Origin: Paraphysomonas bandaiensis
Taxonomy: Eukaryota; Protista; Chrysophyceae
Assembly (NCBI GenBank): GCA_965644295.1
Contig: CBFFRP010000378.1
Coordinates: 434,001-498,000 of the forward strand
Length of the DNA stretch: 64,000 nt
Direction of reading: 5' to 3'
The notes beneath the pieces were generated by a model, which made no database searches, had not been told where the DNA came from, and saw only the letters and a program-made list of their open reading frames with translations. Position numbers and translations under genes: made by a program. Below, in pieces: positions 12,480 through 27,400 of this stretch (within the stretch, counting starts at the first letter, position 1; each line of letters begins with the position of its first letter).

Positions 12480-13050
12480 CAAGATATACAGCGAGGTTAT
12501 GCGAGTTGTGTGAATCATACAGCCAAGAAGGGCACCAAACATGCGGATTTTTCTTGGCGAGAGAAACTCGAGAGAATTTTGGGATGTGAAAGACTTCATG
12601 GGGGCGATTTATTGTCCTTTTTGTAAGAAAGAAAGTATCTCCTGCTTCAAGGAACTTATATCAGTGACTGGAATGGATAGCTCTGAACGACGAACCATTT
12701 CCTATCGTGGAGAATAAGTATGTTCGGAAGAACACCAATTTAGCACCCATCTCAGTGAAGACGGTGATGAAATATTTACAACTCACAAATATACTCGTGG
12801 AAAGGAAGTTGAGTATATGTGTGCGTTGTAAATATTTCATCACCGTCTTCAAGGAAGCTGGGGTTACTCGAGTGTTACTATGCTGCGGACCTCAAGAGCA
12901 ACCGGACGAAAACAATTTACCGTGTATTGATTTTACTGCGGCTGATATCGGAGATTATGTCATTAGTCAACTGCAATTATTCAATAAAACTCTTGCCAAT
13001 GTCGATTGTCTTGTGTGTGATAACTGTGCAGCAACTTACCAGGCCCTGCA
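12480..13050 (+). pseudogene. hAT-type transposase pseudogene fragment
   Basis: WIALNDEPFPIVENKYVRKNTNLAPISVKTVMKYL and LLCCGP...DFTAADIGDYVISQLQLFNKTLANVDCLVCDNCA resemble stramenopile hAT transposases (the DN in VCDNC is the catalytic-type motif). It carries stops and deletions. Confidence 0.7.
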
Positions 13051-13468
13051 GCTTTTAACAACTGTATTCGTTACTAACGGCTGTAAACCAAAAACCTTAG
13101 ACTACATCATTTCATTGCCCAGCTTTAAACAAAACCCAAAACCGTGTATAGGTGTATAGATTGAAATATATAATTCTTCAAACACAATTATGACAATTTT
13201 CACACTTATAGGTTATTGGCTATTAAATATTAAACTACTTTAGAAGCGAGTGCAGTTCGATAAATGCTTTATTATTCAATATATATTGTGCGATCTCGTA
13301 GAGTAACTACATGTACTAAAGCAGTGTCATCCAAATGCAAAAAAGTACTTGCTTGTCACGAAAATTTATGATTTACTTCCAGCTTAGATACGATATCTAG
13401 ATTTTCATAACCAAATCACGTACAAAAAATGCTATGATCATTTAGTCGTACCAATACTGTATATTGCC

Positions 13469-16400
13469 TCAGTCAGATACCCATCCTTCATCTTCTTCAC
13501 TTTCAGCTTCTTCCATTTGAGTAACTGCGCAGACAAACTTCAGTACAAAACTAAAACTATACGGGATAACGCATACAATTGCAGAACAAATTCGACAAAA
13601 AAATAAATAAGAGCTTTTAGAACTTACACTTTCTCAGATTACCCATACGCTGCTTAAACGTGGCCACCATTTCATCTGTGGTTTGCGCCTGGTTTTTCTT
13701 GTATTGGTCGAATGCGTTCAGTACTTGACCAGGAGTGACTCCTGTCGAGGTCTCGACTGGCGTATCTGCGGCGGCTGGCTGAACCGCTTTGGCTTTCTTT
13801 TGCGCCACTCTTTGCTTCTCATCAGCAGCTTTCTTTGCTTTTTCTTTCTTTTCGTTCTAAATTCATACTTAGTCAGTGCTAAATTATACTTGCAATGGTA
13901 CAACACCTCTTCCCTCCATTCCTCCATATCAGTCAAACATTTCTTATACAGCAATGCGAATCGAGTCATTAAATCAAAAAACATCTGGTTTACATCGTCG
14001 CCTCCTTGTGCTTCAGCTTTGTCACCAAAAAACTTACGAATGTCATCGGCTTCCTTTCTGACCTCACCCATTGTATCATGTATAATTCGAACCCTATATG
14101 CAGCATACATAAAAACACTACGTCAAAAATATACAAAGCAAACCTAATTTCAGCGTCTCCAATGAAGTCAACTGCATTACTACGTCAGAGTCATATCTAA
14201 AAAACAGATTAAATATACCTAGCATGTTTCTGAGAGGAACACGAATGTCATCATCAGAAATTTCAACACTTGCCACTAACTCTACTCAGAAGAAATTAAA
14301 GTAACATTAGGAACATTCGATCAAGCGCACCATTCTTTGCGTCGGTCACTTGCGCTTCCAAATTTTTTAAGTCAATTTCCATTTGAGATAGTGACAACTA
14401 CACATCACCGTATTATATTTTGGCTACGACGTTGCGTGATATCTATACCTTTGGCGCCTGCCACACAGAGAGCCACTGTCCGTAAAAAGGAGAGTCATTG
14501 GGATACTTTTTGCCATGCTGCTGGACAACAAAATGCATCAAACTCTCTTTTTTGGAACCTGTTTTCTTGATGTTGACAAGTTTCATCTGTATTATAAATA
14601 CATATAATGAGATACTTGTTGGTGCACAGAAGCCGTAAATAAATACCAATGCATCCAGTTTCATTCCGTGAGCTTGACCACGAGACGTTCCGCCATTCAT
14701 ATAGTTTCCTACATCAGTGTTTTATACAGCAATATATTAGCCACGTTTCAATCATACCAACTGCGAGGATGAGAGACAACACATGCTTCAACGATTCTTC
14801 GCATTCAGGTCGCTTAAACTCCGTGACTACAACAGTACAGAAAATGAGAGGGAGTAGTAGAATGTACTTTTACAAATTTCACTCACTTGCGTTGGAAAGA
14901 ATCTCTAAATCTTCCCACACCTTATCCGCGTTGTCTTCCCAGACGAGAATTGCAGAATGCAGCTTAAGCCTTTTCTCAAGCCTTGGAATATCCACAAGAT
15001 GCAAAAACAGCCTTAATTATTAGAGTACTTGTGAGCACACTTCCGCTGTCACGGTTTAAACATTACCTTCCTGGAGTATCTAACTCATGCACATTTCCGT
15101 CAAAAGCCTTATAACAAGGTTAATTAAAAATTCGAGTTGTCTCCAGTTATATATACCCTAACAAGTGCGGTCTCTTCCGAGGTAGGAACAAGTGGAATTA
15201 AGGTTTCTATAAAAACGTATATAACGAAAATGAGAGTTGTATTCATAAATGTTTTACCAACAATATCATGCGTCAGCACAGCAGGATCGAGGTCAACTAT
15301 CATTTGCGCAATTGCTACAATCCATATCAAATTAATACTGATCAAGACAAAACTGGCACACGAAACCTTGAGGCTGCATTCTTAACCTTCCACAAGCGAT
15401 CGATACATTCTATATTCCCCACCTTAAGAATAAAATAGATTGACGTATTTAACTGACCTGCGTACGCTTTCCATCAAAAAGAGATATGAACTTGGGCTTC
15501 TGTTTCTTGACAACAGCGGTTGCACTAGATTCTATTAACAAATAAAAGAAAGTAAATCCTAAAAAAACTACACACACAAACAGACCCTTCGATTTATTAG
15601 AAGACTCGTCAGAAAATCCATTCTCAAGTTCATCAAACGGTAACACAGGCTCTTCAATGGTAGCCCATACTGTTGCGGCAGCCTACATCTGCGTAAGAGT
15701 AAAACGCATGAGAACGACAGTTACCTCTGCAGCTTTCAACTTGGTCCAAAATAACCCCTTCATTTTCTTTTTAGGTGCAAGCTTTGGCTTTGACGGTAAC
15801 CCTAATATGCACATAAACACTTGCTGAAGTGGACTAGAGTATTACCAGTGTTGGATGTCCCTGCAGGCGCCTGTCCAGGTAATGGCGGAGCGACCCCAGA
15901 TGTGTTGCCGACCTGACCAGGAAGTGGTGGAGGAGGAGGAATATCCCGAGAGCTCTTCACTGCTGGCTTGGTCTGAACTACAGCAGCTGAAGGTGGAGGG
16001 CCAGTGCCTCGACCGACACCGCGACCAGCAAGCTGTAAAATTGCCAGATTTAAACTCAGTTACTGAGGAAAGTATATCATACCATGGCTGCCATTGCAGC
16101 CCCTGCCCCTCCTGAACTAACTCCTCGTCCAGCACCACCACGTCCGCCACCACCACGTCCACCTGATCCCCCGCCTCTTCCAGCAAGCTGCATTATAACA
16201 ATACATCAACCTGAAAAATGAAACGTGTGCACAAGTACCATGGCTTGCATTGCAGCAGCAGCGCCACCCCGTCCTGAGTTGTCTGACCCTGCTGTAGTCG
16301 GGGCTGCGGGAGGTGGAGAACCACGTTGAGCAAATAATCCGGACAATGCGGCCTTCGCGTCAGCTTTAGAGGTACTCTCCTCGGTTACTGGAGTAGCAGG

Positions 16401-19400
16401 TGCTGCTACACTGGTTGCCCCATCTGATCACAGATACAACTTACAAAGCTTCAAAGTAATTCATATGTAATACCAGTCTCAGCAGGCATCGGCATTTTGG
16501 ACTCTTCACCACCCTGATTCTTAGCTTGTTCCATTTTCTCTGCACAATAAAATTAGAATCCTTCACTGTAATACGTGTTACCTACGTCGCTTGGCTGCAT
16601 CCAAAAGACTTCGCCAGACCTTTCGTTGTCCTCCAGATTGTGAACTTTGCTAAGACAATGTCACAACCATTATCATACAGCACTAGTATATACCAGTTGC
16701 TTTCTCAATGCCTCGTTTTCAGCTTTCAAGACCTCCAACTCTACGAGAAGTGGAGGCATAATAAAATCACGAAACCATAATTTGAAGATGCACCTGTCCG
16801 AATGCTGGGGTCTTGAATACCAGACATCGTTACTTTCGGTTTAGCAGCTTTCTATAGTTGAGAATTCCTTATGAATACATAATTTCTTTCTCCCTCACAC
16901 ACATACCTTGCGAGTAGTGCCTTTCTTGGCAGATAACTGATATTCGAAAGCATTTAGAGAGTTAACAAAATACAGTATATGGCTTACCAAACGAATATTA
17001 GCTAAAGTGCTATCAAGAAACCCAATGCCTGGAAATACACCAACCATAAATTATAGTTTCTCGTGGAAGATTCTTACCATCATCGCTGCTAGCAGGGAGT
17101 ATAGCCAATTCCTTGTAACAAAGGTAAATGAAATATATTAAGTTTTCATCGCTAGTACCTGAAGCATCATTCGCAGCTTTTCATCGTGGCCAACAGTTTG
17201 TAGTTCGAACTTTACATATCTGTTGGTGCATATAAAATACATACGAATGCGATTAACAAGATATACCTCGACAGATCAACGATCTGGTTAAAAGCACTAT
17301 TGGAACACGCCAAGACAATCATTTCTTTGTCTTCAGTTTCAATGCGCTTGAATATATCCAACTACATGGTGCGTATTATACGGGCCCCTCATGATTACAT
17401 AAAATTCTTGTTCCTTACCTGCTTTTTAAACTCGGCTTGGGCAGAAATGATATCTTCACGGGAAGTTTCCTTATTCTCTAGCCTTCGGTAATACAGTGTT
17501 ATTGGCAACAATCAAAGTATATACATTTTTGTGTACGGACTTGTAAGCCGTTCGTGCTTTGCCTGCAGCTTGCATGGAAGCATTTAACGCAACCACCCAC
17601 TTTTCTTTCGTTATCTTGTCTGCGACCTATAAACGGCATCAGAAACCGACAAAATAGAAAGCTTATCCACACACCCCAAGGTTATATTTGGTACCATCCG
17701 AGCAAGAAATAACAAAACAATGTGTGAATAGAGCCTGTCATATATAAATTAACAAGCTTCATAGGTATAGGCTACCAAGACCTGAATATTTTCAGCGGTG
17801 GAGTAGCTAAGAATTTCCACAACACGTGACATGGGCTGGCTACCATTAGGGGCACAGTTAATGTCCTATGATAGTAACACATTATCATTGCTGCAAGATA
17901 CAAATTTATTCATGATAACCTTCTCACGGTCTTCTACATGATACCTACATAAAACATACATATGAGTCAATATAAATTACAGCTGCAGCGCACTCACCAA
18001 GAAAATACACCATCAACAAGTTGATACCAGCGATGTTTCACACCCTATTAATCGTCAAAAACGTAAACCAGATATCGTAGAATAAGGAGTGGCAATATAT
18101 AAACGGGGCCATCTCACATCTTTTGACTTCTTGGCTTCCCAACAGTATCCTGCCATAACTCCATGCCCAGGATATATTTCAGTGATACTGAAAAAAATGA
18201 GACGACATTGAAAAATACACAGCACAACTCACCCGTCTTCGGCAATGCCGCGTGTAATGTCATTGTACGAGATTTTCATTCCCGCTTGAAATCTACACAA
18301 AATACGTAACGGATGAATAAATGCGAAACTTGTTTTCTAACTTGATAGTTTTCGGGATTTCGTGTTGCTTTTGCTCGGCAGTAGATATGCGTCTTCCAAA
18401 AGCCTTTCCTTGCGCATCACCACTGTACTCACGAAAACTGGACAGTACACCAGAAAGCACCTAAAACGAGCCACGCGTCAAAAATATAATATATTCATGA
18501 ACAACTTACGTCATGAATGTTTACAGCAAGCAAATCATTGCGAGTCGATATTCGCTGTTCCAAATCTACACAACATTGTTACACCACCATCGTAGGCATG
18601 AATGGCGATCACATACCAGTATCGTGATTGATTATTGCATTCATAAGACCAATTATGGCAGCTTGAACTTCAGCATCCTGATACACGCAAAATGACAGGA
18701 GAAATATATAAACATTTAAGCATCGAACCTCTGTCGTTAGTGCATTGGCTAGAATGGCATAAGGTAACTCGTTTCTACCACACAACACATTACCAGATTC
18801 AGAACAAAGCTATACGGTACCTCTTTCGTGCAAGATGACGGAACCCCATCACAGTCTGCCAGACAGCTTCACTTTCTCCAAAAGAACAAACCACCGATAA
18901 CAGATTCAACACCTAGTACATAGTGTGACCACCATTAGAATTCAACATCTTATCCCAATGCTTCCAACCCATGATATCAATGCAACAAAACAACATAATA
19001 ACGCGCAAATTCAATATATAACCACCACAGTTATTTACAGTGAACAAACCTCCATCGCAAGGGGCTTATATTCAAATCGAAGTGACATAACAAACGCATC
19101 AATTGCGCCTGGAAATATTATCAGCTGATTGACAACGATACAGGTCAAAAAATCCACGACATGTACCTCTAGTGTCGATAGCTGTCTTGATGCCGCCTTC
19201 TTTCATAATGTGTATTCTGATACAGAATTTAAAAAACGCATAACTACAGAAAACACTGTAACCCACAGGCAGAGTAGCAATTGATGTAGTGCTGCGGCAT
19301 CCGTTTCCTCCAGCGGCTCCTGGAACATATTTAGAACGATAATACCACGCTGAGAGAGTAATACTACACAAAGCCGACATCAACGTCCATGCTACTATGC

Positions 19401-20615
19401 AACCAACACACGGATCAGTACACTTTTCACCTTCTCAAGCCGATTATCCATGTTCTCCACTAGCACTGATATCCCTGATATTCAACCGACAATGACATCT
19501 TATTCTCGCATGATATGTATACACACCTCCAGACGTGCAGAAATTACTGAGCCAGTCTTCATTCGAGTGCTCTATGCGGTACTTGCACGTAAGAAGTCGA
19601 ATAGAGTCTATTGACCTCTCCGAGTCCATTATAGTTACCATTTCTTCATCTTCCTTCGAAAAATGGGGATGGTCGTCTAGGACACTGTACAAATTGTTAT
19701 GGAGAAATACTACACAATGCTATTCATTTACCATAGTGATCGCTGTACATGCTGAAACCTCTCCATAGGAGTGTAACTACTGCTTAGGGATTCACGGAGC
19801 GATTCAGTCACCTGTAGCTTTCGCAAGAGTTCCGCGAAGTAACCGTCAATCTCTTGCAACACGTCCGGATCAATCGGTTTCGGTTTCGGGTTTGCTTCGG
19901 AGTCAAACTCCTGCTTCTTCTTTTTTGCTTTTGCTTTAGCATCATTGTACTTATTGAGCTCTTTCTGATACTCCTCGAACATGCCCTCAATTGATTTGAG
20001 CCGAAGCAGCAGAGTTCGCTTCGGTTTTGGAGGATACGTTGCTGCCAGTGCAGAGACGAGCTCTTCTTTGTTCTTAAGAACCGTATAATCAATATTCTTC
20101 AACGTGCAAAAGTACTGCAGGTCCTCGATCTTGAAGCTGCTCAACAGAGTATGATCGGGAGGAGGCTGGGGACGATCTTTCTTGGGGAGTGGTAAGGTCG
20201 TGAGCTCCTTCCCTTTCGATCCGCTCTTATTTTCAGTACCAGTCACAGATTCAGTCGACAACTGCTTTGGTTCAGCATTTAAATCATTTGACTTTTCTTT
20301 GTCGGATGTCTGTACACCCTCCATGTCTGCATATGCAGTTGTGGGCATCTCTTGTGTATCACTCTTCATACCAGACAGAGTCTCAACAGACATATCTTGA
20401 GGGGACTCTTCCTTGCCATCATCTTGATTCATCTTAGTCTCATCACACTCTACCCCTTCAGATCCTTCTTCTTTACCAGATCCAGCAATTAACTGTATAG
20501 AAATGAATATATATTTATATAAACTATAAAATCAAATATATCTTACATTATTAATTTTTCTAGCCATTTTCGTCAAGCGAAACTTTCTTGGTTTTGATTT
20601 AGCTTCGTCTGACAT
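13469..20615 (-). CDS. Formin (GBD/FH3 - PH - coiled coil - FH1 - FH2), many small exons
   Basis: ATG at 20615 (MSDEAKSKPRKF). GBD-like HSNEDWLSNFCTSGG. PH-like RWYQLVDGVFSWY...EKWVVALN at ~17570-18170. Pro/Gly-rich FH1 at ~15850-16400. FH2 motifs PKKKMKGLFWTKL, ISLFDGKRTQ, NGGTSRGQAHGMKLDAL and SLMHFVV. TGA at 13469. Confidence 0.92.
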
Positions 20616-20996
20616 GGTAGTAAGATTAGTTACGTCTATTAGTAGAGGATATCCAGGTTATGCATGTAATGTGAATATTCGAGCTACCATAACACACAAT
20701 CTCGTTCGATCTTTTGTTTTTTTGTTGTATCATTGTACATACATACTACGACTTGTATGTATGTATATCCGTGTGTTTTCAGGTAATTCCACTAGTAAAA
20801 TTATCAACCGTACAGTCCGTCTACATATTGTATATTTTTCTGCTATCCGTATTCCTCAACTGAAATATCCCTCATATGGGATAAAATACTTCTTAAAGTG
20901 ATTGATATCTCGTTAGAACTCTTCACGAATTCGCCTTCACCAAGAAACAGACTCCTTTAACTATCTTTTCACATTATTTCTATTGCATCCCTTGAG
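20616..20996. promoter_or_regulatory. Probable bidirectional promoter between the formin and NAA80-ACTMAP genes
   Basis: 381 bp separates two divergent ATGs. Inferred from geometry only. Confidence 0.5.
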
Positions 20997-22385
20997 ATGC
21001 CATTGCAATTAGTGGACTGTAAGAGTGTATCAGATGATGTGTTGTATGATGCAGCCGAGTTGTTGTCATCTTATTGGACAGGATCGATTGCTACAAGAAA
21101 ACATCAGATGCTAAGCAACACTGGAAGTTATGTATTTGTTAAGGAGGATAATAACGACAATCATCCCCAACAAAAGGGAATAGGTCATGTAAAAGTTATA
21201 CCATACAGTGCAACTGGTGATGATGCATTCGGTCCTTGTCTCTGTGGAGTAGTAACATCCGTTATCATTGCAGAGGAATATCGTGGTCAAGGTTATGGAT
21301 ATCGTCTTATGCAGATGTTAGAGGATGTGGCCATCAACCTTGGCTATTGCTTCCTGTACTTGTGGACCAGTGACGCTGTCGAGTTTTATTTGAAAGTTGG
21401 CTATCGCAGATGTGAAAGGGTTCACGAAGCTGTGTCTGCTTTGAAATCAATGAGTTCAACCTCCATATCTAAGTTGGAAAGTATGATATCCAATAAGGCA
21501 GCCGTGGTACTTGATTTGGATGGTGCGGGTGGCACTATGTCCACTGTGTACATGAAGAAACGTATCAGAGATGAGGTTCCGCTGGAACCCTGGACTATAA
21601 GCGAGTTGAGAGCCCAATTAGTCGACGATATTTCTCCGTTAGTAAAGAAAGACAACCTATTTGTTGATGTAAATATAAATCATGTTCCATGGGGGAGACA
21701 AGTTGGACCGTCTTGTGGTATACAAGCGCTTCGAATGACAGCAGCTTATCTTAATCGTTCAACTTTATCGCCAAGTAAGTCCCTTCTACAAGAGGCTATC
21801 GATAAAGGATACAGTTCAGAGGGTGAAATATTTGATATCAATCATATATCAGCACTTGCTGTCTCCATTCACCTGTCTGCTAGGGTATGTCCACTCTCTG
21901 TACTAGGTTTTAATGGGATCCGTGATTTGCTCTCCACCTCTCCAAAGTCAGTTATAATATTACCATACGACAAAGGCCCGTCTTGTGAGCCATGCACTGA
22001 GGGTGGACGGCGCGCACACTATGCAGTGATATGCGGTGCAGCATGTCGGTACTCTGCTGATGTAGTCGGATGTAGTCGCGATGAACGTGTTCGTGTGATT
22101 ATAGATAGTGATAATGCCATCCAGGACTGGCCACATGATAATTCAACCGAACAATCGAACGAATTCTTAATTGCGCTACAAGGGCTGTCAAAGCGCCCCA
22201 TTATTGCATCGTATTCACAATGGAAAGAGTCTAATGCACAGCTTTTTGACAATTCTCTTTGCAAAGACAGTTCTACAATTGATGATAGAGGTAAATTGGC
22301 TAGGCAAAACATAGCGAACAGCAAGTGGATGATTCCTACTGCGGGGCCTAACCTTTCAGGAATGTGTGTTATTGTGTCTTCATAA
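20997..22385 (+). CDS. Fusion of NAA80-like GNAT actin N-terminal acetyltransferase and ACTMAP (C19orf54)-like actin maturation cysteine protease
   Basis: Single 462-aa ORF. N-half: DAAELLSSYW..S.ATR, IGHVKV, VTSVIIAEEYRGQGYGYRLM, LYLWTSDAVEFYLKVGY, TVYMKKRI. C-half: QVGPSCG.QALRM, LLQEAIDKGYSSEGEIF, ILPYD...EPC..GG.RAHYAVI.G, LQGLSK, KESNAQL, NLSGMCVIV. Confidence 0.85.
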   Translation: MPLQLVDCKSVSDDVLYDAAELLSSYWTGSIATRKHQMLSNTGSYVFVKEDNNDNHPQQKGIGHVKVIPYSATGDDAFGPCLCGVVTSVIIAEEYRGQGYGYRLMQMLEDVAINLGYCFLYLWTSDAVEFYLKVGYRRCERVHEAVSALKSMSSTSISKLESMISNKAAVVLDLDGAGGTMSTVYMKKRIRDEVPLEPWTISELRAQLVDDISPLVKKDNLFVDVNINHVPWGRQVGPSCGIQALRMTAAYLNRSTLSPSKSLLQEAIDKGYSSEGEIFDINHISALAVSIHLSARVCPLSVLGFNGIRDLLSTSPKSVIILPYDKGPSCEPCTEGGRRAHYAVICGAACRYSADVVGCSRDERVRVIIDSDNAIQDWPHDNSTEQSNEFLIALQGLSKRPIIASYSQWKESNAQLFDNSLCKDSSTIDDRGKLARQNIANSKWMIPTAGPNLSGMCVIVSS

Positions 22386-23136
22386 ATTTTAATCCAATAT
22401 AGCGATTAGTATTCATTATACTCTTCTCTGCAGTACATATGTACGTACTGGCATACTGGAGTGTCGGGCCGAAAACTATCGAAAATTGAATATTATATTC
22501 TCAACTTTACGAAGAATTACTATGGGCACAGATATAGAAGTAATTTATGTGTTCATTTTATACGGATGAATATTAAATAAAGAACTATTACTATATTTCT
22601 AAAGGTAGTACCACTGGTAGCTTTGTTCTTTGTATATTGTAGAATCATTTTGCCGAATATTTTACTTTCCACTCTTATAACATAACACTCTTAGAATACG
22701 GGAAGAATTTTTTTATACTGAATATACACTACACAACTAGCAGAATAATATGCTCCATAACATCATAACATATTGTCAGTGGGACTACAAACAAAACACT
22801 CAAGAGGAATGAGAAGGTTAGCACGTATTATTACACACCAATGTATTTAAAAGACTAAGATTGGGTATGTTTCGCAAACATGTGACTTGTAAGTATACTC
22901 GAATGAGACGGGAAATATTATTCAACCTAGTCAAATTGGTTGAATTACCTAATCACACTATTTTTGGTGGAATAACCTAGTCAAAGTAATAAATGATTCA
23001 ACCTAGTCATTTTTTTTAAATAATAAGGATCTCTTGTAAATTATGTCACAAGCTCACAACAACACGTTGCCTAATAGTCACACAGATAAGACGATTCCTA
23101 ACTATATAATCCACTTGCATCTCTGTGTTTATCATC

Positions 23137-24118
23137 TCAAGCGGAGGAAGATGCAATGTCGGCGATGTTGCTTTTGTTCGACGCGATGCGCCTCTCCAAG
23201 TACTCCTTTCTGCCCTCCAAGTCCCTCTGGGTCTTGCTGAGCTTCTCACTCTCTTTCTGCAGGAAGGTTTCAATCGAGTCCCTGGGCTCGCGGAGGAATG
23301 CCTTGCCTACTGTGCGGTATAGGGGAGTTTCAGCGTCATACGTGTCAATCTGCTGTTTAGTCACAAGATTGGAACGGAGATCACGCTGGCAGGAGGCAAG
23401 GGACCCCTGCACACCGCGGAGATCGCGAGCATAATTTGAGGTCTGCTCCTGGAGCTCCATCAACTGTTCACATATTCAGTGCACACATAAGTTGGGAAAA
23501 CATTTAAGAAAAATTTCAAATCAATAAAATCTACGAACCTCACGGCGCTGGGACTCATCCAGCTGTCTTGGGGCACGAGCCTTCTGCTTCGTAAGGGCTG
23601 CCTTTTTAGCCCGTACCACACGGAGCTGCTTCTGCAACTGCTCGTTTTCTATTGCACATCCACACCAGCATAATGATAAGGGTAGACTAGGAATTTATGT
23701 ACGGCACCTGAATCTATTCTGAGGGCCTCCTGAAGAACTTTCTGGGCATCGTCGAAATTGCCCAGCTCGGTGTGGGCAACAGCGAGACGGTAATATCCCT
23801 TAACAAAAGATGGGTTCTTACTGATACACGTGGATGCATCTTGAATAGCAGCATCCCATGCTTTCAAAGAAGAGTGACAAGCACTGCATTATCCATCAGT
23901 GATAGCCACGACTAATAGAGTAATAACAAACCTTCTATTCGAATAATAAATAGCATTTTCTGGGTCACAAGAAATAGCATTAGAATAGTGGCCGATAGCT
24001 TCTTCATAATTTTTGGAAGCAAATGCTTCATTTCCTAGTCTATTAATAGGGTTAGTTATATATATTACAGTCATTAACAGTTATGTGATACATACTTCTT
24101 GTGATCCTCTGCTGACAT
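23137..24118 (-). CDS. STI1/HOP-type TPR domain fused to beta-type prefoldin subunit (PFDN1-like), 5 exons
   Basis: Splices as MSAEDHK-LGNEAFASKNYEEAI..YYSNRSAC..KGYYRLA..DSENEQLQKQL..QRRE/LMELQ..LYRTVGKAFL..KEYLERRI. The two GT-AG junctions linking TPR to prefoldin (~23707 and ~23538) keep the frame. Confidence 0.85.
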
Positions 24119-24491
24119 GTCTTTATTTGCATCTGAATCCATTATAGTGGGTAAATTATTAATGTGGGTGTAGTTGATGGAAGGGTGTGATAAATGTTTG
24201 TGATTATGGTTCTATCGGGTGAATAGCATGTAACATACATGTATAGTGAGTGGATGATTATTGGTACAACAGCAGCTCCAGCTGTATGCAGAGTTGTGCG
24301 GTATGTGTATACATAGTGCAGAAGCAGTGTGTGATATGTATATATATGAACTGTATACAGCTGTATATACTGTATATAGGGTATAGTACCCCTCATACTG
24401 GCTGTTCACCGCGCACTCTATACGTACCAAAGCACGGGGGGTGTGTGTATGTATGTAAAGGGTGGGAGGGGTGGAGAGGCAGGCATGACAG

Positions 24492-27400
24492 TAGGAAGGC
24501 GGGTACGTATCTTGGCGGTATTTTTTTGCACTTTTCAGATGCACTTAAAATAACACTCACTGCATGTCTGATTGCAGTGAAAGCATCATTGGAAACGTGA
24601 TGATTTTACCCATATTTCATTCTAAGTGACGAACTGCACTCATAATCTGAAGCTTTTGATATTCATCCTCAAAGTGAGCGCCTTAAGAGGTTTTTGACCT
24701 CATTTCAGTTTTTGGTTTTTCAAAATGGCGGGATTTTTCCCTCTCAGATGACTGCAAATCACAGTCACTTAAATTAAATTGGAGTATTTGGAGATGGTCA
24801 TTGCTCATAGCGGCCATGTGGCGATACAGGTAGACTAAATGTATAGTGCTTGACACGATGGTGCTCTTACTTTCAACTGATTCGCAGTATTCATGGTGAT
24901 AAGTTCTGGTTGGGGAGGAGGGGTCGATTTCGATACGCCGGCACACCACACCTGCGAATGACCTCAACTGACCTGTAGATATACACTCAACTATTGCTCA
25001 TTATATGCGCAATACTATCAGCACACTAATTTGAGTATATGCTCTCCTCTGCGGCATTGTGCATCACATTTCTGAAATAAGCGTGTGTTTAGATTAGCCA
25101 GACGATGACTCTAATGCTGCACCTCTGGAGCGAAATGGAGGCTCTGGTGAATTGAGGAGGAAAGGGGGAGGACTCTGGAGCTGTTTCGGTCTCAGGGTGA
25201 TGCCCGGATTGAAAATTCACTATTCTACAGGGGTCAGGGTGAGGCATGCGGAACAGCAGATGTAGACAGTGAAATTCATTGCACGGGGCTCTGCTCGCAG
25301 TGAAACGTAGAGGGATCCACATTGACGCAGCCCACCAGCGATCCTTGGCCGAATCTTTTTGGAACTGTGGATGTGGTCAAACCGACTGGTGCTTCCCCCG
25401 TCATGACTGATTGCTATCCTAAACTTTTCAATGGTTGAACACCCAGACTCATAGTGGGTCGACTTTGATCCATGGGACATAGGGCACCCCTCTTGAGGAA
25501 CAGCGGGAGCTCAGCAACAACCTGCACTGGATAAAGGTCAGAGGGAACCTGGCCACCTCAGTATTCATACGATTCATAGTACTAAACCTTGCTCTCCAAA
25601 TATATGTTATTGATGCCGAGTAGTATAGGAGTACTACAAGTGATAGATTAACTAAATTATTATTTTGAATTGTTTTTGTTCTGTTGCATATTTACTAAAA
25701 TTGTTTCTACTTCTTAATTTATATTATGTTACACCCATTGAGATTTACTTAAAATCGGACATTGACTGTGTCGTAGAAGCTGGCTTAGTTTGGTCAACAA
25801 GAAGAAGTGTGTAGCCATCAGTGTTGAACTTTATTACTTTCATTCAACTCGTAATTAAATTTCACACTGGAGAAAGAAAATATTAAAAATCCAAAACAAA
25901 AACGATGTTACGTAAAATCATACATACGACAGAGTTAAAGTAGATACGAATATGTACTGCTGGTTTGTGGTATGTATGCGTTGACTTTGCATGAGCAGAA
26001 GTGATTACAATTGTATGCACTTTATCATGCGAAATATCCAAAGAAAATAAAGGACCGAACAGAATCTCAAAAGAAAATAAAGGACCAAGTGGGGTCAAAA
26101 CAAAATAAGAGACTCGCAAGTACGCGATTAAATAGCAAGTAACCTACGCCGCATCGATTGGCTCTCGATCTGATTCCGATACATAAACCTCCTCTCTCTC
26201 CACCTCCACTCCCCCGTGCAGCTGTTTCAACTTGTCAGACATCAGACCTTCGAGCTTGGCTATGAGGTAGGCCTTCGTGCCAACCTTTAGCTCAGGATCA
26301 ATAGGAGTAGTTGCCTTAGGAAGGACAATTAGTGCGGCCTTTAGAACATCATTATTGGCCGTGCGCCAGTCATATTGCTGGTCGCGCACACGTACCAAAA
26401 GCGCCTCCAACGCCTCAACATGTCGGTGATATTCTTCCATCTGGCGGCGCTCCTTTTTGTCCTTACGGCGCTCTTTAGCCTGTTACCCAGAAGGATGTAT
26501 GCTCACCGTGTCTTGCAGAGAATCGCCTTTCCCTCCGCTCCTGAAAGAGTTTGAAGGTAGGGAAGGCGTGCCCCCAAGGGTCGAAGCCAATTTCGTCCCA
26601 GTTCTCGATATCCTCCAGGTCTGGCCCATATGACGGGAAGACCCCTTTCTCTATACACTCCCTGAGGTGCTGCGTGAACTTACGGGCCATAGTACTCGCC
26701 CGGGTCGGGCAGGCCGCTGCTGCCCGCTTGTAGGAAAGATCGGATTTCTTCGTAAAGCGGGCAAACAATTTTCACCAAAGTCAAAAGTGCAGGGTTTGAG
26801 AAAGTTGTCTCGAATAATGGTTTTACTGCATTTTGCATGATCAAGGCATACCGACTCCGGGTATCCTTGCCTCCATTGGCAGTGCGTACAGCACTGGCAT
26901 GGGCGCGGCAATACTCCCTGGCTAGGGCTCGCAAATGGGCATTGCTATACCTGCACAAATAATTACAAAATGTACACTGTACGTCATCATCCACATCATA
27001 CACTTTCATGTACATACCCATATCCAGCTTTATCTTGAAGGTCCATCTTCGTAGCCATGGAGTGAAGCAATCCTTTAGGACCAGACAGGAGTAATCCAGC
27101 TCCATGATGGCCTTCTGTAGCACAGAATGGTTCGTTGGATCGTTCCGAAACATATTAAACTCCTTCGTAGTGAGTCCATACAACTCCCGGATGGTGTTCA
27201 TATCCCGCTCCTGGGTGCGAATAGAGACACCGTACTCCGTGAGAACATGTTTAGAGCTCTTGCCATCAATTACCCTGGCAATGAGCCCGGCCCTACGCGC
27301 TTCAACTGTGTAAACTTTGTAGCTCTGTTTGACGTCTACCTCAGGGATATTATCGATTGCGCTGATAATCGCCGTTCTGTCGCCATACTGGGGAAGCTGC

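Follow-up and report, generated by a model that had tools for sequence, protein, structure and literature searches.

A single gene of Paraphysomonas bandaiensis joins a clamp-type TPR domain to the organism's only prefoldin subunit 1, a putative adaptor between Hsp70/Hsp90 and prefoldin

We analyzed a stretch of 64,000 nucleotides of the marine chrysophyte Paraphysomonas bandaiensis (assembly GCA_965644295.1, contig CBFFRP010000378.1, positions 434,001 to 498,000; hereafter the window), eukaryotic DNA of ~40% G+C, and found that a gene on its minus strand encodes a protein of 255 residues in which an N-terminal TPR domain is fused to prefoldin subunit 1 (PFDN1). This gene, TPR-PFDN1, is expressed as a single spliced mRNA, its product has both domains and a complete carboxylate clamp, no other PFDN1 is encoded in the genome, and the organism's Hsp90 and Hsp70 proteins end in MEEVD and IEEID tails, respectively. 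We consider it probable that the protein, as the sole PFDN1, would assemble into the prefoldin hexamer and, via its clamp TPR domain, couple Hsp70/Hsp90 to prefoldin. An earlier interpretation made from the letters alone (the sequence-only reading) had proposed an Hsp70/90-to-prefoldin adaptor, and this is supported by the sequence, transcripts and comparisons below, from which we infer the adaptor function.

To establish the structure of the mRNA, the window between positions 22300 and 25000 was compared with four public sequencing runs, namely a poly-A metatranscriptome (X1), two organism-labelled runs from other studies that are recorded as probable RNA (X3 and X6), and a run of probable DNA origin (X18). 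One RNA-derived contig in each of X1 (954 nucleotides, nt), X3 (936 nt), and X6 (959 nt) spanned the gene from ~24200 to ~23000, and in all three exactly the four introns in Table 1 had been removed, with CT..AC ends on the plus strand; the DNA contig from X18 was unspliced and colinear with the window. With introns 3 and 4 taken out, the last TPR exon is connected to a linker exon (exon 4) and the linker to the prefoldin exon (exon 5), and the mature mRNA therefore carries one continuous reading frame. Base differences from the window at 23146 and 23392 were present in all runs and are third-position and synonymous; as the DNA run has both, we regard them as strain differences.

The possibility of two separate genes, which the sequence-only reading had itself raised, is ruled out by these contigs, which represent a single spliced mRNA in three studies. 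Two adjacent genes, one for a small TPR protein and one for a plain PFDN1 initiating at Met 23460, joined by mistake either by that reading or by the assemblers, would be in keeping with exon 5 alone, which starts with LM and would yield a prefoldin of 107 residues, and with the many "stand-alone" proteins of 105–109 residues in the databases. However, such an artefact, to which we give scarcely any credence, is contradicted not only by the splicing of introns 3 and 4 but also by exon 4, which has no in-frame ATG and is conserved among homologues, being colinear with residues 107–141 of the homologue P0298. The short database proteins are last-exon open reading frame (ORF) calls with TPR exons upstream. 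In a relative with GC-rich DNA (L033, assembly GCA_001756985.1) the fusion is one uninterrupted, intronless ORF of 771 nt, and MMETSP transcript-derived proteins of relatives, including P0298, are full-length fusions. The contig of another relative (L034) matches in exon order and intron positions, with the TPR and linker exons upstream on the same strand. The two-gene reading is rejected.

The coding sequence (CDS; 24142..23137 in window coordinates, 768 nt) is divided among five exons (Table 1), all four introns have GT..AG ends, and the reading frame is preserved across every junction. Exon 1 ends with two bases of a Lys codon; exons 2, 3, and 4 translate as LGNEAFASKNYEEAIGHYSNAISCDPENAIYYSNR, ACHSSLKAWDAAIQDASTCISKNPSFVKGYYRLAVAHTELGNFDDAQKVLQEALRIDS, and NEQLQKQLRVVRAKKAALTKQKARAPRQLDESQRRE, respectively, and exon 5 starts with LMELQEQ and runs through PLYRTVGKAFL to KEYLERRIASNKSNIADIASSSA and the stop, with YLERRI in its C-terminal part. 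Read-through of intron 3 would terminate the TPR protein there, at an in-frame TAG. The proposal that in-frame splicing unites three TPR motifs with a complete beta-type prefoldin was thus accurate, all of the elements described being present on the minus strand, and the junctions that had been placed near 23538 and 23707 are exact, as these are the ends of introns 4 and 3. The proposed extent of the gene holds for its end at 23137 and less well for its start, which had been placed at the second ATG (24118); the ATG at 24142 is the more likely start, because an in-frame TAG lies upstream of it at 24214..24212 with no ATG between the two, making it the first ATG in that frame, and because the transcript contigs cover it.

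Table 1. Parts of the TPR-PFDN1 gene, in window coordinates
Feature	Position	Strand	Remarks
5' untranslated region (UTR), minimum extent	24143..24202	minus	X1 reaches 24202, X3 24200
Exon 1	24096..24142	minus	ATG 24142, second ATG 24118; acidic N-terminus; first clamp Lys (..EDHK/K, the slash marking the junction); 24096/24039 splice in three RNA contigs
Intron 1	24040..24095	minus	56 nt, GTATGT..TAG; spliced out in X1, X3, X6; retained in DNA run X18
Exon 2	23932..24039	minus	TPR motif 1 and start of motif 2 (LGNEAF..., YYSNR); clamp Asn residues of GN and SNR; TPR_11 3.6e-8
Intron 2	23884..23931	minus	48 nt; spliced out in three RNA contigs
Exon 3	23708..23883	minus	remainder of TPR motif 2 and motif 3 (ACHSS..., FVKGYYRLA, RIDS); clamp Lys and Arg; TPR_1 4.4e-11
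Intron 3	23649..23707	minus	59 nt; spliced out in three RNA contigs
Exon 4	23539..23648	minus	TPR capping helix, basic hinge, start of prefoldin N-terminal helix (..QLDESQRRE)
Intron 4	23464..23538	minus	75 nt; spliced out in three RNA contigs; same position in relative L034
Exon 5	23137..23463	minus	prefoldin beta domain: helix, LYRTVGKAFL hairpin, helix; stop TGA 23139..23137
3' UTR	23011..23136	minus	contigs stop at 22976-23027, at a high-copy repeat

For protein comparisons the exons were searched one by one, and folding was done on P0298, the nearest full-length relative in the databases. Exon 5 matched the Pfam family Prefoldin_2 (PF01920) at 51.2 bits (gathering cut-off 27.6; E 1.3e-13) over profile positions 2–100 of 106; the linker exon 4 had no significant Pfam match. 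The best solved relative of exon 5 was human PFDN1 (6nr8_1; 9.6e-6, 78 aligned residues that include the hairpin and YLER), the sole human prefoldin chain matched, and archaeal beta prefoldins gave far weaker scores. The Prefoldin_2 match and the human best relative bear out the claim that the C-terminal part is a prefoldin and, judged by sequence, this half is orthologous to subunit 1 and not to subunits 2, 4, or 6.

A six-frame scan of the whole P. bandaiensis assembly (62.6 Mb, 669 contigs) with the PF01920 profile identified five loci above the cut-off: one PFDN2-like (contig C89), two PFDN4-like (C363 and C26), one PFDN6-like (C430), and TPR-PFDN1 itself. A protein search with exon 5 matched the TPR-PFDN1 gene alone. 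Because neither search revealed another PFDN1-like locus in the 62.6-Mb genome, where the sequence-only reading had suggested looking for a separate plain PFDN1, the fusion is the organism's only prefoldin subunit 1. Genes for alpha-type prefoldins are also present. Hsp90 (C288/C431), HOP (C314/C153), and PFDN4 (C363/C26) each occur as two diverged copies on separate contigs, which could be haplotigs or the result of duplication; TPR-PFDN1 was found once. Candidates for a stand-alone PFDN1 in close relatives, matches of 105–109 residues, were rejected: P0005 proved to be the last exon of a fusion gene, and the cluster of a 263-residue Pedospumella protein includes fragments of 105 residues. 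Many 105-residue "prefoldin" entries in the databases are such last-exon fragments of the fusion gene.

The copy number bears on whether the fusion might act mainly outside the canonical hexamer, either as a free Hsp70/Hsp90 co-chaperone or as a subunit of a prefoldin-like (R2TP/PAQosome-type) complex, making it a lineage-specific counterpart of the link between RPAP3 and the prefoldin-like module and not a modified classical prefoldin. Prefoldins are reported to act with Hsp90 in Arabidopsis (PMC7293050), which is in line with such a role. We think this decidedly unlikely, however, as the canonical complex would then miss a subunit, TPR-PFDN1 being the only PFDN1-type gene. In addition, the prefoldin part is full-length and conserved, including its hairpin, the Gly-Lys of which is invariant in 124 full-length relatives, and separate genes with the RPAP3_C domain (PF13877) exist at three other loci in the genome; the Pfam scan of its exons showed that domain to be absent from TPR-PFDN1.

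The alignment of exons 2 and 3 with human HOP runs from end to end over residues 367–459, which form TPR2B (exon 2 with 367–400 and exon 3 with 402–459), and the next best solved relatives were Sgt2/SGTA, PP5, and C. elegans STI-1. By sequence and by structure (structure ranks 1–5), the TPR domains of SGT/Sgt2 and CHIP are the closest non-fusion TPR relatives. The earlier description "HOP-type" is thus apt for the TPR domain, which resembles TPR2B and TPR1 of HOP as well as the domains of SGT and CHIP, and inapt for the gene itself, which is not HOP. The carboxylate-clamp consensus of the TPR domains of Hsp70/Hsp90 co-chaperones is K5N9 - N6 - K2R6 in motifs 1–3 (PMC2939883), and all five residues are present in the window protein, in HKKLGN (with the Lys four residues before the Asn), YYSNR, and VKGYYR. 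In the same 124 full-length relatives the first clamp Lys is found in 107 (with Arg in seven others) and the first Asn in 123, and the Asn of SNR, the Lys of KGY, and the Arg of YYR are invariant. The dicarboxylate-clamp pattern that had been noted in the window is therefore complete, and it is nearly invariant in the family.

The expected EEVD-type ligands exist, as the organism's own chaperones keep their tails: the tail is TMEEVD in two Hsp90 genes and KIEEID in four Hsp70 genes of the cytosolic type. A predicted complex between the TPR part of P0298 and the last 40 residues of the organism's own Hsp70 scored 0.04 without controls, and constitutes evidence neither way. Since the classical clients of prefoldin have acidic tails, the TPR domain might instead bind another acidic C-terminus, such as a tubulin tail, a CCT subunit, or another co-factor, and so provide prefoldin with an additional arm for clients or docking. 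Clamp TPR domains recognize a short acidic C-terminal peptide, their specificity coming from residues outside the clamp (PMC2939883), which leaves room for such a ligand. We nevertheless view this alternative as unlikely, because the clamp has the same five residues as proven EEVD binders, TPR domains of Hsp70/Hsp90 co-chaperones make up all of the nearest sequences and structures, and the Hsp70 and Hsp90 of the organism itself retain EEVD-type tails.

The structural comparisons were made with P0298 (254 residues), which is colinear with the five exons at 58–80% identity in exons 2–5, exon 1 being matched over eight residues. An AlphaFold2 model of P0298, built from a 124-sequence family alignment, had a mean predicted local distance difference test (pLDDT) score of 93.9. 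In order, the model comprises six helices that make up three TPR motifs, a cap helix (residues 108–129), a hinge of lower model confidence (130–135), and a helix-hairpin-helix. This last part, 68% identical to the window protein and with pLDDT of 95–98, consists of a helix at 136–182, strands at 189–193 and 196–200, and a helix at 202–249, such that two long helices of 47 and 48 residues flank the beta hairpin LYRAV-GK-CFLLS. The predicted fold is hence that of three tandem TPR motifs with a capping helix, followed by the helix-hairpin-helix topology of a prefoldin. A Foldseek search of the PDB with the TPR part of the model returned SGT, Sgt2 with an Ssa1 peptide, CHIP, TPR1 of HOP, OM64, PP5, and RPAP3 with Hsp90 peptides. 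The top matches, all EEVD-binding TPR domains, had template modelling (TM) scores of 0.82–0.93 by target, and for HOP TPR1 with an Hsc70 peptide the TM score was 0.93 by target at a root-mean-square deviation of 1.1 Å.

How would such a protein work? The coiled-coil arm of a beta prefoldin has the two ends of the chain at its distal tip. The C-terminal half of TPR-PFDN1 would take the place of PFDN1 in the alpha2-beta4 hexamer via its beta hairpin and coiled coil, and with the chain ends at the arm tip the TPR domain would be tethered there, next to the client-binding cavity, hanging on its capping helix and six-residue hinge beside the mouth of the cavity. There it would hold cytosolic Hsp70 and/or Hsp90 by the C-terminal (I/M)EE(I/V)D tail. 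Prefoldin in the fusion-bearing lineage would in this way be permanently coupled to these chaperones, and actin, tubulin, and other unfolded clients could move among Hsp70/90, prefoldin, and the CCT chaperonin. Several points weigh against this proposal. Incorporation of the fusion into the hexamer is assumed from homology, the model that was folded is that of the homologue P0298 and not of the window protein, and clamp TPR domains can also bind other acidic C-termini. The preference for Hsp70 or Hsp90 cannot be read from sequence, and the RNA contigs are compatible with an additional shorter transcript that may arise from inside the gene, for example one using Met 23460.

The fusion is not confined to P. 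bandaiensis. A HMMER search with exon 5 against 1.84 billion representatives gave 168 matches, dozens of which are of 245–275 residues with the prefoldin part C-terminal. Among the longer matches that were checked, Prefoldin_2 was found in all 42 and TPR in 35 at E <= 0.001, the rest being mostly shorter and N-terminally incomplete, and a profile search added more than 110 further clusters with TPR and PF01920. In all, over 120 full-length relatives have the same layout, the TPR plus Prefoldin_2 architecture for which the sequence-only reading had proposed a search. None of the first 298 database proteins retrieved was the exact window protein, whose nearest named relatives are chrysophytes, with ~51-52% identity in exon 5.

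The named members belong to seven ochrophyte classes and Platysulcus. They comprise diatoms (Cyclotella, Discostella, Thalassiosira, Conticribra, Skeletonema, Seminavis, Cylindrotheca, Mayamaea, and Chaetoceros), chrysophytes (Ochromonas sp. CCMP1393, Spumella, Pedospumella, Dinobryon, Chromulina, and Epipyxis), the synurophyte Mallomonas, the brown alga Pylaiella, Chrysoparadoxa, the xanthophyte Tribonema (Tribonema minus), the pelagophyte Pelagophyceae sp. CCMP2097, and the deep-branching heterotrophic flagellate Platysulcus tardus. A cluster of 83 proteins in the ESM Atlas (Prefoldin_2 in 99%, TPR_1 in 92%) is labelled mostly Oomycota and, going by these labels, which are the sole basis for it, oomycetes are probably members as well. 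Word searches for oomycete or non-stramenopile fusions, seeded with the Platysulcus protein and with P0104, returned only more ochrophytes (Pelagophyceae sp. CCMP2097 and Tribonema minus) and ordinary SGT/HOP proteins, and no named fusion member was seen outside the stramenopiles, though most matches carry no label. This distribution of sequences indicates that the fusion is an old and widespread stramenopile gene and not unique to the P. bandaiensis genome.

Other architectures were encountered in these searches. A second ESM Atlas cluster, of 76 oomycete proteins of ~460 residues, combines TPR_1 with an alpha-type Prefoldin domain (PF02996) and represents a second kind of TPR-prefoldin fusion; at the alpha-type prefoldin loci of P. 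bandaiensis (L036, L037, and L038) no TPR was found within the same ORFs. The gene model of a 529-residue protein of Skeletonema marinoi (P0275), named "chaperonin CPN20," has TPR, Prefoldin_2, and Cpn10 (PF00166) and is probably two neighbouring genes merged in annotation.

In the databases, the fusion proteins are named "Hsp70-Hsp90 organising protein," "Stress-induced-phosphoprotein 1," "TPR repeat protein," "chaperonin cofactor prefoldin," or "hypothetical." The HOP/STI1 label that family members bear in UniRef is wrong, a misnomer. A full-text search of the literature, of incomplete coverage, found no description of a TPR-prefoldin fusion, and a census of Arabidopsis and rice clamp TPR proteins does not mention prefoldin (PMC2939883). 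The fusion, then, has been in sequence collections unrecognized or mislabelled, and it appears not to have been described before as a biological entity.

The transfer of clients such as actin and tubulin between Hsp70/Hsp90, prefoldin, and CCT is only partly understood, and a sole PFDN1 that is naturally fused to an EEVD-clamp TPR domain is a "Rosetta stone" that predicts a direct physical link between these systems. The near-invariance of the clamp among lineages that diverged deeply argues that a link between Hsp70/90 and prefoldin is used. A broader proposition, which we offer tentatively and would place a little short of an even chance, is that a single ancient fusion made classical prefoldin itself an Hsp70/Hsp90 co-chaperone in all stramenopiles (diatoms, brown algae, chrysophytes, pelagophytes, and oomycetes, down to Platysulcus), with the chaperone tails docked at the client cavity and a direct, obligatory relay from Hsp70/90 through prefoldin to CCT. 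If so, other eukaryotes would achieve such a relay, if at all, without a covalent link, and the fusion would be usable as a rare genomic change that marks the stramenopile lineage. Tractable diatoms have members of the family and so, per the Atlas labels, do oomycetes.

Some features of the DNA around the gene were also noted. Just past the 3' end of the transcript, at 22846-23027, all contigs break and the summed contig depth of the DNA run is 13,000–23,000, compared with ~95 around it; the motif AACCTAGTCA(A/T) is present three times. This segment resembles a short repeat present in high copy, perhaps a MITE-like (miniature inverted-repeat transposable) element. On the other side, transcript contigs of a neighbouring plus-strand gene, with a GT..AG intron at 24827-24884, begin near 24632. 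As this gene is divergent from TPR-PFDN1, the ~430 bp between the two (24203-24631) are probably a shared promoter region. Long microsatellites of the TGTATG/CATACA type, which are read as CMYV or HTYI repeats in ORFs and inflate mechanical ORF lengths, adjoin several genes of the genome, the PFDN6 and PFDN5 loci among them, as seen in the window at ~24240-24470 and at L005 and L036.

Compared with known systems, TPR-PFDN1 combines parts that are otherwise found apart. It shares with canonical PFDN1 (human 6nr8_1 and 7wu7_1) the Prefoldin_2 domain, the helix-hairpin-helix, the hairpin motif Y-x-x-V-G-K-x-F, and the C-terminal YLER; however, canonical PFDN1 is a stand-alone protein of ~120 residues, and the fusion adds ~140 N-terminal residues that form the TPR domain, the capping helix, and the hinge. 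With HOP/STI1 it shares a TPR domain of three motifs bearing the K5N9-N6-K2R6 clamp, but HOP has three such domains (TPR1, TPR2A, and TPR2B) and two DP/STI1 domains and no prefoldin, whereas the fusion has one TPR domain and no DP domain, STI1 (PF17830) having no match in any of its exons or in the Pfam lists precomputed for members of the family. We rejected the identification of the fusion as HOP, since it has only one TPR domain and no STI1 domain and true, full-length HOP is encoded elsewhere in the genome (contigs C314 and C153), and likewise the idea that it replaces HOP or RPAP3, both of which are encoded elsewhere. Like SGT/Sgt2 and CHIP, it has a single clamp TPR domain of the kind that binds Hsp70/Hsp90 tails, joined to a second functional module; that module is a dimerisation/Get5-binding domain with a Gln-rich client-binding region in SGT and a U-box in CHIP, and in neither is it a prefoldin. 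The PAQosome (R2TP/prefoldin-like co-chaperone) also unites an Hsp90/Hsp70-binding TPR protein, RPAP3, and a prefoldin-type hexamer within a single assembly (PMC5902453, PMC5460035). In that case the connection is non-covalent and runs through RUVBL1/2, PIH1D1, and URI1, and the prefoldin-like module uses URI1, UXT, and PDRG1 and not PFDN1, whereas in the fusion the TPR domain lies within the PFDN1 chain itself.

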